NCBI RefSeq assembly: GCF_000315625.1
Contig: NW_005434619.1
Location: 227,357 to 291,356, forward strand
Direction: 5' to 3'
Source of the DNA: Guillardia theta CCMP2712
Taxonomy: Eukaryota; Protista; Cryptophyta
Length of the DNA stretch: 64,000 bases
In this document: in pieces, positions 54,370 through 60,969 of the stretch
Numbering within the stretch: the first letter of the stretch is position 1
How the letters are laid out: each line of letters opens with the position of its first letter
Program-made: the position numbers and the translations under genes
The notes under the pieces: generated by a model
The model's input: only the letters and a program-made list of their open reading frames with translations
What the model was told of the DNA's origin: nothing
The model's database searches: none

Positions 54370-55419
54370 GTGACTGGGGCTGGTTTTCTGAGAATGTTAG
54401 AACGAACACTTTCCACCCCATTGACGTTTGCTACCGACATCGCCCAGCCACAGAAACATTCGACGTACTGGGAAAGCCAGTCCTTTCCTCACTTCCTGGG
54501 TTATGGGACGGTCCTCTACGGTTTCGAACAGATGTGCACATATCCCTCTCAGATCTTGAAGACGAAGTTGCAAGTAGATCTGCAGCCCAACCGGCCATTC
54601 CTCCGCGAGCTCCTGCATCTTTGCCAGGACGTCTATCGAGCCGAGAGGATACGAGGGTTCTACAAGGGAGTCGTCTTCAGCACAGTGTCGACCATCCCTG
54701 CACAGCTCTTCTTCCTGAGCACGTACGGTTGGAGCAAGGATGCTCTGGAGAGACGCGTGGGGCCCGAGCTCAGAGATTCTCCCCTGGTCCCGCTGTGTGC
54801 TGGAGCGTTGGCGGAGACTGTCACCTGCGCCATGTGGGTTCCCATCGACGTGATCGTACAGAAGATCCAGATCGAGCCCCTTGGTCATGCTGCAGGATGG
54901 CGCTGCGGCTTGAGCCCGGTGGCTGGGCTAGCGAGGACGAAGGGGCCGAGCTCGCTGAGCTCCCTGGAGGTTGCAAGGAAGATCTGGTTAGAGGATGGGA
55001 TAACGGGGTTCTGGCGGGGGACGGACGTGCACCTGCTGCTCTTCGTTCCTCAAGGAGCGATCTGGTGGGCAAGCTACGAGCATACCAAGAAGATGCTCAA
55101 CACTCGCATGCAGACAGTCGACGACAAAGCCCTCAACGTTATGGCCGGGATGTCGGCCGGAGTGATCAGCTCGACCCTGACCAACCCGCTGGACATAGTC
55201 AAGGTCCGCATACAGACTAAGGTGGAGCAGTCAACCTCTATAGTGAAGACCCTGGTAGACATGGTCAGAAGAGAAGGGCTCCGATCGCTGGGTAAGGGGC
55301 TGGCCCCTAAGATCTTCATGTCGGTTCCAGTCTCGGCCCTCTCTTCGTTCCTTTACGAGACACTGCTCTCGCTCTCTCGCAAGGAAAACCCTTTCCACAT
55401 TGCCACAATAAACCCTTGA
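54370..55419 (+). CDS. Mitochondrial carrier family protein (SLC25A44-like), intronless
   Basis: Three carrier repeats: YPSQILKTKLQ, VPIDVIVQKIQ, NPLDIVKVRIQ, with RGFYKG, TGFWRG and SLGKG. Confidence 0.93.
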   Translation: MTGAGFLRMLERTLSTPLTFATDIAQPQKHSTYWESQSFPHFLGYGTVLYGFEQMCTYPSQILKTKLQVDLQPNRPFLRELLHLCQDVYRAERIRGFYKGVVFSTVSTIPAQLFFLSTYGWSKDALERRVGPELRDSPLVPLCAGALAETVTCAMWVPIDVIVQKIQIEPLGHAAGWRCGLSPVAGLARTKGPSSLSSLEVARKIWLEDGITGFWRGTDVHLLLFVPQGAIWWASYEHTKKMLNTRMQTVDDKALNVMAGMSAGVISSTLTNPLDIVKVRIQTKVEQSTSIVKTLVDMVRREGLRSLGKGLAPKIFMSVPVSALSSFLYETLLSLSRKENPFHIATINP

Positions 55420-55573
55420 ATGTCTTCCTCTATGGTGCTGCCTTGTCGACACATGGATAAAGTTTCTTTGATTTCATTTTCAAAAATGCCCTTGATTACC
55501 TTCATTCAGTCCACCCGTCACTTTCAACGCCCTGTCCTCGTCACATTTAGACCATCACAGAAGCAAGAAATGG

Positions 55574-57257
55574 TCACTTTACCATTTCTTCCAGTTGATG
55601 CAGCTCCTGGTACTTTTCTTGAGATCTTCTTCGGCTCATCAGGCTAAAGACAGCTCCGACTATCAGAGCGATAAAGATCAACTGCACAAGAGTGTCAGAG
55701 TAACCAAATCGAGAAATTTCAGTTTACGTTGGCGCCAATCAGTGCTGTTCGATTTAGCCCCTGAATTCTCCATGAAAGCTCTTGCGAAATTTGCCCCCAT
55801 GGCGACTCACTATCCTCATAGCTCCCAACTTGCGCATCCAAGATGGGCTTCATCCCCTCCGGCGCAGGATCAGCAAAGACGGCCAACATGAAGGAGCCTG
55901 TATCGAAGATCACTTGCAACGGCTGAGGCGGAGTGCCGATGGACAGCTTGATGTTGTAGGTGACTCTGCTCTGTGACTCCAGCGCCACCTTGTCCACGGC
56001 TTGACCTTGGTACAGCCCCATAGTCAACGCTGACTTGGCGCTCGTGATACGCCTGTGGGCCCGCACCTTGGACAAGGGATTGAACTCTGCAAGCTCCTGG
56101 CTCCGCCCCTTGTTGGCACGATACTGGGAATGTTGAGATAGGGTCGCTGACGAGTCCGTCTCGACTCCCAGCTTGTAGCTGGGGTTGCGGAGCGCCAATC
56201 CCATCTTCTTGTCCTTAAGATCGACAAGGTCGTGCAAGACAATCCACTTTCGGAACCAAGGGTCTCCCAGGATCATCGCAGTCTCGGCGGGCTCTACACA
56301 CTCCTCATATGCGATCTCAAACGTTTCCCCCCCAATGGTGTAGACGAGCGGGAAGGTCCCACCCTTGTTCTGCTCATTCAGCAAGATCTCAAACGGATTT
56401 CGCTTGAAAGTTCCGTTGACAGTCGAGTTGGGAATCAGCAAGCAAGTCGTGCCGGAATCGAACTCGCCCACGTATGCGTGGTGGTTCCCCATGAAATCCA
56501 ACAGCTCGACGTTACCGAACTTGATGGAAGTGACGTTCACTCCATAAGCATACCCAGCCATGGGGAACATCTGCATTGGCTCGGCTACGGAGTCTGGCTC
56601 ATATCCGCCAAGCTGTAGCTCACCAATGCTGTCATCAGCAGTGAACGCAAACTTCCTGGGCATAGGGACGAAGTCCTGACGTTGAACGATGTCCCAATGA
56701 GGTCTTGACTTGGTCGTCAGGGTCTTCAAGATGGCCGCACTTCTGTTCTGATTCGCCCAGCCAAACCCGATGATACCGTCAACGTCGTTGAAGTTGGCGC
56801 TGTTGCAATGTGTAATCATACCCAGACGCGTTTCAACCCGATACTTCCCCAACTGTGCCATGTCCTGCCCATCGTAGCCAAGGAGGTTTGTCTTGTCCAA
56901 GAATGTAACATTCACGTTGCCAAGCTTCACAAGCTTGAAGGTGCTGCTGGTGGTTGGGTGGAAAAACTTCTTGTTGTTGTTGTGATAGCCGATCATCAGC
57001 TGCGCCACTGTGGACGAGCGTTAGAATACTTGATCAAACAGGGAAAAGCATGAGGGTACAACAATGAATTCATACAGGACTTGCACCGATCAGAACATGG
57101 AACAGGTTGAAAGCAAATTTTCAAGAAAGTTTTCATTTTCTCATCATTTGCCACACTGTGAAACCGAAGCATAGAAACCACAAAACGAACCTGTTCCACT
57201 CAGAGCTCCGAGGAGAGCAAGAGACCGAAGAAGTCGGAAGGAGCTCGGCTTGCTCAT
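55574..57257 (-). CDS. Pepsin-like (A1) aspartic protease, circularly permuted, type I membrane protein; exons 57257-57191, 57007-55728, 55681-55574
   Basis: Signal peptide MSKPSSFRLLRSLALLGALSGT|VA; FHPTTSSTF, DGIIGFG, GELQLGG, FDSGTT, ILGDPWFR, then YNIKLSIGTPPQPLQVIFDTGS; TM LIGAN|LIFIALIVGAVF. Confidence 0.9.
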
Positions 57258-57419
57258 TTGCCTCTGAGTGCGCCGCTTCCCTTCCTCCACCATCCCTTCC
57301 CCTCCCCTTCCTCCAGCCATATTGCCGAAAATAGCTTCTCCTATATCGGGAAGTTTTACAACTACCAAACTTGGGCATGCCCCCGAAATGGGAAATACTA
57401 TAAAGTTTCAAAGTTCGAG

Positions 57420-57715
57420 GCGAGCGCGGCCCGCACCGTACTAGCCCGTACTACGACTGTACCGTACGGTTGGACCGACTGAGCGGGCCGGGCCGGCCGC
57501 CCGGCTTGGGCTCGGGCCCGGTTGAACTAGCTGGGTGTGGCCGGGCTCGCCGCCAGTCACACGAGTCTGGGGCCCCGGGCCGCAATCATGAATGGCTGCC
57601 CGGCTCGGATGCGTCTGATTGGCCAGCCAGTGTGCCGGGCGCCGCCGCGGGCCGGGACTCCCGCTGCCGGGACCGTGACTCTGGCAGGGCCCGCTCAGGA
57701 GACTCAGGCCCTCTG
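57420..57715. promoter_or_regulatory. CCGG/GGCC/short-palindrome-rich non-coding island upstream of a gene (recurrent class)
   Basis: Similar tracts at 37130-37300, 42690-43075, 53545-53600, 18565-18605 and 31668-31690; function inferred from position only. Confidence 0.4.
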
Positions 57716-57782
57716 GATGAAGTGTGTTTAATTTGCATTAAAGGAAGAAAGCAATCAATCATCGTGTTTGTGTACATCTTCT

Positions 57783-60969
<3,187 letters not shown>

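Follow-up and report, generated by a model that had tools for sequence, protein, structure and literature searches.

Gene model and transcription

The protease gene lies on the minus strand of the window (64,000 nucleotides of Guillardia theta DNA, the whole stretch analysed), where it runs from 57257 to 55502 in four exons and encodes a protein of 491 aa (CDS segments 57257-57191, 57007-55728, 55681-55583 and 55531-55502). Its structure was established by mapping sequencing runs to window positions 55000-59500, using transcript contigs of three separate studies (X1, X3 and X6) and raw RNA reads (X19). Coordinates of the gene and protein features are listed in Table 1. A 429-aa open reading frame (ORF) at 55719..57008 (-) contains all of the motifs from which the first-pass annotation, made from the sequence alone, had proposed a circularly permuted, membrane-anchored pepsin-family protease.

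The intron placed by that annotation at 57008-57190 was recovered exactly, with GT..AG borders on the minus strand, in contigs of all three studies, and the proposed exon 1 is joined to exon 2 (57007>57191) in three runs. The Hanusia phi orthologue P0001, a transcript-derived protein of 489 aa, has the identical junction (..GALSGTVAQLM..), is 95% identical overall and shares the exon junction sequences and the C-terminus. The 3' end of the gene required correction: the annotated stop at 55574 (..EEMVK) falls within intron 3 (55532-55582), and the spliced CDS finishes with ..EEMGVESDGWTE and a stop codon at 55502, as in P0001. In the X6 contig (record 9) intron 3 is left in place, which would give the alternative tail ..EEMVK ending at 55574 instead of ..EEMGVESDGWTE.

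At the 5' end, the furthest positions reached by the transcript contigs of the three studies are 57315-57374, 60-117 nt upstream of the ATG, and no reads cover 57416-57566. An upstream exon supplying a DTG motif, a possibility that the first-pass annotation had itself raised against its reading, is thereby excluded.

The protease gene is flanked on its 3' side by a convergent single-exon gene for a 349-aa mitochondrial carrier (54370-55419 (+); Pfam Mito_carr, three repeats, 1.6e-50). One X1 contig (2846 nt) spans both 3' ends, indicating that the carrier and protease transcripts abut or overlap at approximately 55420-55500. The next gene upstream (57713 to beyond 59500 (-)) is represented by a separate contig, is interrupted in the RNA contigs by eight or more short introns of 49-275 nt with GT..AG ends and includes a His/Asp-rich low-complexity coding stretch at approximately 57780-58330.

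Table 1. Features of the protease gene and of its product, in window coordinates and residues of the 491-aa protein
Feature	Residues	Window positions	Strand	Evidence or remarks
5' UTR		57258..57374	(-)	Longest contig end 57374 (X1 record 1); X3 ends at 57324, X6 at 57315
Exon 1, start codon and signal peptide (MSKPSSFRLLRSLALLGALSGT and first base of V)		57191..57257	(-)	Sequence; joint 57007>57191 in 3 runs
Intron 1, 183 nt, GT..AG		57008..57190	(-)	X1, X3, X6
Exon 2, entire permuted protease (body, linker, N-piece, stalk, first 6 TM residues)		55728..57007	(-)	
Intron 2, 46 nt, GT..AG, within TM-coding stretch		55682..55727	(-)	X1, X3, X6 and 4 raw reads of X19
Exon 3, remainder of TM helix (ALIGAN/LIFIALIVGAVFSLM), then SRRRSQEKYQELHQLEEM		55583..55681	(-)	
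Intron 3, 51 nt, GT..AG		55532..55582	(-)	Spliced in X1, X3 and 2 raw reads (X19)
Exon 4, GVESDGWTE and stop codon (55504-55502)		55502..55531	(-)	C-terminus agrees with P0001
Predicted signal peptide	1-24			
Protease body	37-296	56187..56966	(-)	Equivalent to pepsin ~47-326; has flap (VTFLD..GY), DGIIGFG, FDSGTT and MILGDPWFR
Second catalytic motif FDSGTT	DSGT 206-209 (Asp206)	56445..56462	(-)	
Linker	297-359	55998..56186	(-)	Mostly low model confidence
Basic strand SKVRAHRRITS in linker, prosegment-like		56040..56072	(-)	
VDKVALESQ	360-368	55971..55997	(-)	Equivalent of A1 mature N-terminal strand (..VPLxN..)
Relocated N-lobe piece SRVTYNIKLSIGTPPQPLQVIFDTGSFMLAVFAD	369-402	55869..55970	(-)	Pepsin ~10-45; Pfam Asp profile 2-23
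First catalytic motif DTGS	391-394 (Asp391)	55893..55904	(-)	
Stalk	403-443			
TM helix	444-464			Kyte-Doolittle maximum 2.5 at 443-465, then SRRR; same in P0001
Tail SRRR..YQEL..	465-491			
YQEL, YxxPhi-type motif, predicted cytosolic tail		55601..55612	(-)	Sequence

Order of the protease segments

The encoded chain consists, in order, of a signal peptide, a protease body with the DSGT motif, a linker of ~63 aa, the equivalent of pepsin ~1-45 (IGTPPQ..FDTGS), a stalk, a transmembrane (TM) helix and a tail with YQEL. Pfam Asp (1.3e-18) matched ORF residues 11-199 at profile positions 40-219, and the start of the profile was found downstream, with TAXi_N 1-25 and Asp 2-23 matching ORF residues 351-375. 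Because the match to Asp 40-219 precedes that to the profile start and both lie within the ORF at 55719..57008, the swapped order is real and is contained in one exon, as had been claimed in the first pass. A1 profile positions 1-~34 come after ~40-310 in this protein, which departs in this respect from the canonical A1 chain order. Within the single exon the motifs follow one another as FFHPTTSSTF, DGIIGFG, FDSGTT, MILGDPWFR..KKMGLA, the basic linker and YNIKLSIGTPPQPLQVIFDTGSFMLAV; DTGS is at the position first given for it, and FDSGTT was located as in Table 1.

The body begins ~12 residues past the signal peptide, with no N-terminal prosegment between them. Sequence and hydropathy indicate a type-I layout (signal peptide, ectodomain, one C-terminal TM helix and cytosolic tail) that is shared with relatives, and the hydropathy maximum and YQEL fall where the first-pass annotation had a TM helix and cytosolic tail. 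The motif Y[QH]EL is common to P0001, P0002 and P0008, and YQEL may have a sorting function. All six N-x-S/T sequons of the protein are ahead of the TM helix.

Predicted fold and catalytic site

AlphaFold2 was run on the exon 2 protein (426 aa) with a 46-sequence family alignment and returned a pepsin fold (mean pLDDT 81.9, pTM 0.81), in which the relocated DTG piece (model residues 346-378) forms three strands of pLDDT 93-97. Foldseek matched the model to A1 proteases only, with a probability of 1.00 (plasmepsin X, pepsin, chymosin and BACE1). By VIA-align, model residues 6-274 correspond to human pepsin 47-326 (Z 19.9, rmsd 2.2, 236 residues aligned), and the range was the same for cathepsin D, renin (prorenin) and chymosin (Z ~20, rmsd 2.2-2.7 over ~240 residues). 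This correspondence places the new N-terminus in the pepsin 45-50 loop and identifies pepsin 1-46 as the part absent from the front of the chain.

Docking of the relocated piece was modelled with ESMFold2, with residues 1-285 (body) and 305-385 (tail segment) supplied as separate chains, alongside three controls. The two-fragment score was 0.86, as compared to 0.00 for the best of the three controls. In the benchmark, 51 of 78 solved complexes attained 0.86, as did 2 of 108 mismatched pairs. A pass of this kind may reflect solved A1 structures that the model has learnt, and is to be read as likeness to the pepsin fold and not as binding. Contact agreement in the two-fragment runs was at least 83% and partner pLDDT at least 59. 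According to the contact list, the confident interface includes body residues 74-82 (DGIIGFG) and 181-187 (FDSGTT) against 337-345 (VDKVALESQ) and 347-382, the latter containing DTGS. The tightest pairs link the V-I-F strand ahead of Asp368 (model numbering) with G-I-I of DGIIGFG, which is the psi-loop arrangement known from pepsin. Both predictions agree with the earlier proposal that the C-terminal piece completes the N-lobe. On these predictions, the permuted chain regains a normal pepsin fold in which the two catalytic motifs share an interface.

The two aspartates stand in hydrophobic-hydrophobic-D-(T/S)-G-(S/T) motifs, as in A1 enzymes (FDSGTT and FDTGSF). The catalytic D-S-G-T and D-T-G-S are invariant in the 46-sequence alignment, and the hydrophobic-hydrophobic-Gly motifs are also conserved, being invariant or nearly so. 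Two positions depart from pepsin: that of the flap Tyr75 is occupied by Phe (VTFLD), with F in 36 and Y in 8 of the 46 sequences, and that of Trp39 by Ala. Kinetics may differ as a consequence.

These same substitutions in the subfamily could be read as those of a non-protease with a permuted pepsin fold, either a binding protein or a pseudo-enzyme, in the manner of the xylanase inhibitors (TAXI) and pregnancy-associated glycoproteins, and motifs are degenerate in certain paralogues (DFSQ on C19; DINS and DTP at C9:1007k) and in the Andalucia member (DSA). Tyr75Phe variants of canonical A1 enzymes nevertheless stay active, and the near-invariance of both D(T/S)G(S/T) and both hydrophobic-hydrophobic-Gly motifs across the gene and its 46 aligned relatives is the pattern expected from purifying selection on catalysis. 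We consequently consider a non-catalytic role unlikely and the protein a protease by prediction.

The linker as a candidate internal prosegment

Across the family the linker is 26-259 aa long (median ~70). A basic strand of the pattern x-(K/R)-h-x-A-x-R-(K/R) is always present within it and is followed ~15-40 residues later by VDKVA(L/V/I) or, in divergent paralogues, by V/I-P-I-x-N, a type that is the usual mature N-terminus of A1 enzymes. A profile of the linker and N-piece aligned VDKVALESQ to the N-termini of cardosin and phytepsin. The same profile matched zymogens in the PDB and aligned to mouse prorenin residues 10-89, with the basic strand paired with RIPLKKM of the prorenin propeptide at posterior probabilities that are middling in the propeptide part. 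Pfam A1_Propeptide gave no match at E<=10 to the linkers of the protein and three relatives. The structural models disagree on which linker strand is ordered (312-322 or 337-345): AlphaFold2 assigned pLDDT ~94 to SKVRAHRRITS and <50 to 338-344, whereas 337-345 is ordered instead in the ESMFold2 complex.

Conservation of the basic strand and its alignment with the prorenin propeptide suggest that the linker may be a relic internal prosegment, which we regard as probable with moderate support. The first-pass annotation had moved the prosegment to the C-terminal side together with the first catalytic strand; relocation of the strand is upheld, and that of the prosegment is moderately supported by the basic strand and the prorenin alignment.

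The length, the wide variation in length and the mostly low model confidence of the linker would also allow the C-terminal DTG piece to complement the body of a neighbouring molecule, such that a domain-swapped dimer or oligomer on the membrane is the active form, and in the two-fragment model the piece does dock onto a separate body chain. The monomer model is already confident as it stands, however, and even the shortest linkers, of 26 aa, are long enough to join the adjacent termini in cis. Swapping is judged unlikely, and completion of the N-lobe within a single chain is preferred.

Distribution and origin of the permuted family

A Pfam Asp search of the whole G. theta genome gave 33 matches, and wherever a locus has both pieces, positions 1-~34 of the profile are found downstream of ~40-310. 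A body HMM and an N-piece HMM were built and run on 26 fetched G. theta loci, among which ~20 distinct permuted loci and no canonical locus were found. Three loci showed only a body. Two of these combine degenerate motifs with a downstream remnant of the N-piece and for that reason look like pseudo-protease paralogues; the third (C56) had no N-piece within the 10 kb examined. Permuted order with altered catalytic motifs was observed at L020 (G000:C19:204000-213999), where DFSQ replaces DSGT, and at L019 (G000:C9:1001000-1010999), where DINS and DTP replace DSGT and DTG. From their motifs, both paralogues are likely pseudo-proteases.

Among 246 fetched proteins, 153 were classified as permuted, none of them with an upstream DTG, and the same classifier called cathepsin E, pepsins and plant, diatom and yeast A1 proteases canonical. 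The cut point is common to the 153 proteins and the ~20 loci, with the body profile beginning at position 1-2 in most. Recurrence of the motif order in algae, for which the first-pass annotation had suggested a search, was thereby established in five cryptophyte genera (Hanusia, Hemiselmis, Rhodomonas, Baffinella and Guillardia), and the order extends to Ancoracysta twista (P0101) and the jakobid Andalucia godoyi (P0136, ANDGO_05950). The layout of P0101 and P0136 is likewise signal peptide, body, linker, IGxP..DTGS and then TM. The second motif of P0136 is DSA, not DSG, and a homologue search from the Andalucia protein gave one distant relative only. P0133, a EukProt transcript from outside the cryptophytes, is also a permuted A1 protein. 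Searches of the ESM Atlas by features and by shape returned canonical A1 clusters only (TM 0.5-0.6, sequential alignment) and no permuted cluster.

An artefact, whether an assembly error or a partial duplication with the true first DTG in an upstream exon that was missed, is rejected as having next to no chance of being correct, and no evidence in its favour was found: the same order occurs at ~20 G. theta loci and in 153 proteins without an upstream DTG, read depth is zero beyond the ends of the spliced contigs of three studies, and body and N-piece lie in a single exon.

Phylogeny of the body region was computed with FastTree only. A single branch (97 SH-like) divides the 117 permuted rows from the 12 canonical ones, and the tree fits a single origin of the permuted order, with canonical rows that are few and mostly animal. 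Proteins with a tandem N-body-N-body arrangement, which the duplication model set out below needs as an intermediate, were considered as candidates for it and rejected: P0167 (704 aa, metagenome), P0186 (Entomortierella, a fungus) and P0203 (a sheep hybrid) are probably the result of fusion between canonical genes or of gene-model merging, with no relation to the permuted clade.

Proposed architecture, origin and activation

We conclude that this transcribed nuclear G. theta gene very probably encodes a type-I membrane-anchored, circularly permuted A1 aspartic protease with predicted catalysis. Past the signal peptide, the new N-terminus is equivalent to pepsin ~47, in the Cys45-Cys50 surface loop, from which the chain covers the flap, the rest of the N-lobe, the entire C-lobe with DSGT, the ~63-residue linker and the pepsin ~1-45 segment. 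The termini of pepsin adjoin each other in the inter-lobe sheet; given this adjacency, the relocated piece could, as modelled, slot into the N-lobe and restore the two-aspartate active site. The six sequons on the ectodomain and the YxxPhi-type tail suggest that the enzyme is lumenal or extracellular and belongs to the endomembrane, endolysosomal or surface system.

The order may have a single origin: a zymogen gene would have been duplicated in tandem and fused, and the first pro and N piece and the second body would then have been lost, to give body - prosegment - N-piece. A relic prosegment in the linker is what would be left by such a duplication and the loss of both outer parts. The conserved basic strand, as that relic, may hold the enzyme latent until displaced or cut, and a cut in the linker would yield a two-chain enzyme that is membrane-tethered via its DTG fragment.

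A more extended proposal is offered tentatively, as possible rather than probable: an old permuted clade of single origin, present also in Ancoracysta and jakobids, would have replaced the whole A1 repertoire of cryptophytes, the linker would be a working internal prosegment, and latent single chains would activate themselves by a linker cut to become two-chain proteases tethered via the DTG fragment. To our knowledge, self-activation into two chains tethered through the DTG fragment is known in no aspartic protease.

Comparison with known aspartic proteases

The pepsin family is among the best-studied enzyme folds, and its order of prosegment, DTG lobe and DTG lobe is treated as invariant. 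The G. theta protein has in common with canonical A1 enzymes (pepsin, cathepsin D, renin and plasmepsins) the bilobal fold, the two D(T/S)G(S/T) motifs, the hydrophobic-hydrophobic-Gly motifs and a secretory signal peptide. Unlike these enzymes, its chain begins at pepsin ~47 and finishes with ~1-45, a prosegment-like strand stands inside the linker in place of an N-terminal prosegment, and Phe replaces the flap Tyr. The disulfide loop Cys45-Cys50 of pepsin is the cut point and is lost. The attributes of a natural circular permutant, namely the same fold and cyclically shifted residues across a whole family, are present.

BACE1 (memapsin 2) and plasmepsin V, both of which were among the Foldseek and VIA matches, similarly combine a lumenal or extracellular A1 domain with one C-terminal TM helix and a short tail with sorting-type motifs. 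In those enzymes the TM helix comes after the C-lobe, whereas here, in a chain of different order, it comes after the relocated N-lobe DTG strand, so that the first catalytic segment is the one that carries the membrane tether.

Two-chain A1 enzymes (mature cathepsin D, cardosin A and phytepsin) are active when cut, with the DTG-bearing N-terminal fragment held non-covalently, and the cathepsin D light chain and a cardosin A chain matched the N-piece profile. Their genes have the canonical order and the cut is post-translational, while here the gene itself encodes the altered order, and the linker is where any cut would fall.

A literature search for a permuted A1 protease fold returned swaposin and unrelated permutants only, in keeping with the statement in the first pass that none was known to have been described. 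Swaposin, the plant-specific insert of phytepsin-type A1 proteases, was the sole circular permutation tied to A1 proteases by the search, and it permutes the inserted saposin-like domain, not the protease fold. The CIRPIN survey mentions aspartic proteases only via the saposin-like insert. The permuted A1 family is large and conserved and is apparently undescribed.

Its existence is of clear interest for protein evolution and protease biology. The pepsin fold is seen to tolerate new termini at the 45-50 loop, and the family offers a case in nature on which the duplication-deletion route to permutation can be tested, the linker perhaps still keeping a relic of the prosegment; an internal prosegment in turn raises the question of how zymogen latency would work. 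Protein engineers who design split or permuted aspartic proteases have in the family a natural template. Annotation based on domain order misdescribes the whole A1 complement of cryptophytes, for which Pfam gives a truncated Asp and a stray TAXi_N, and the permuted proteins are labelled in public records as hypothetical or 'Peptidase A1 domain-containing'.
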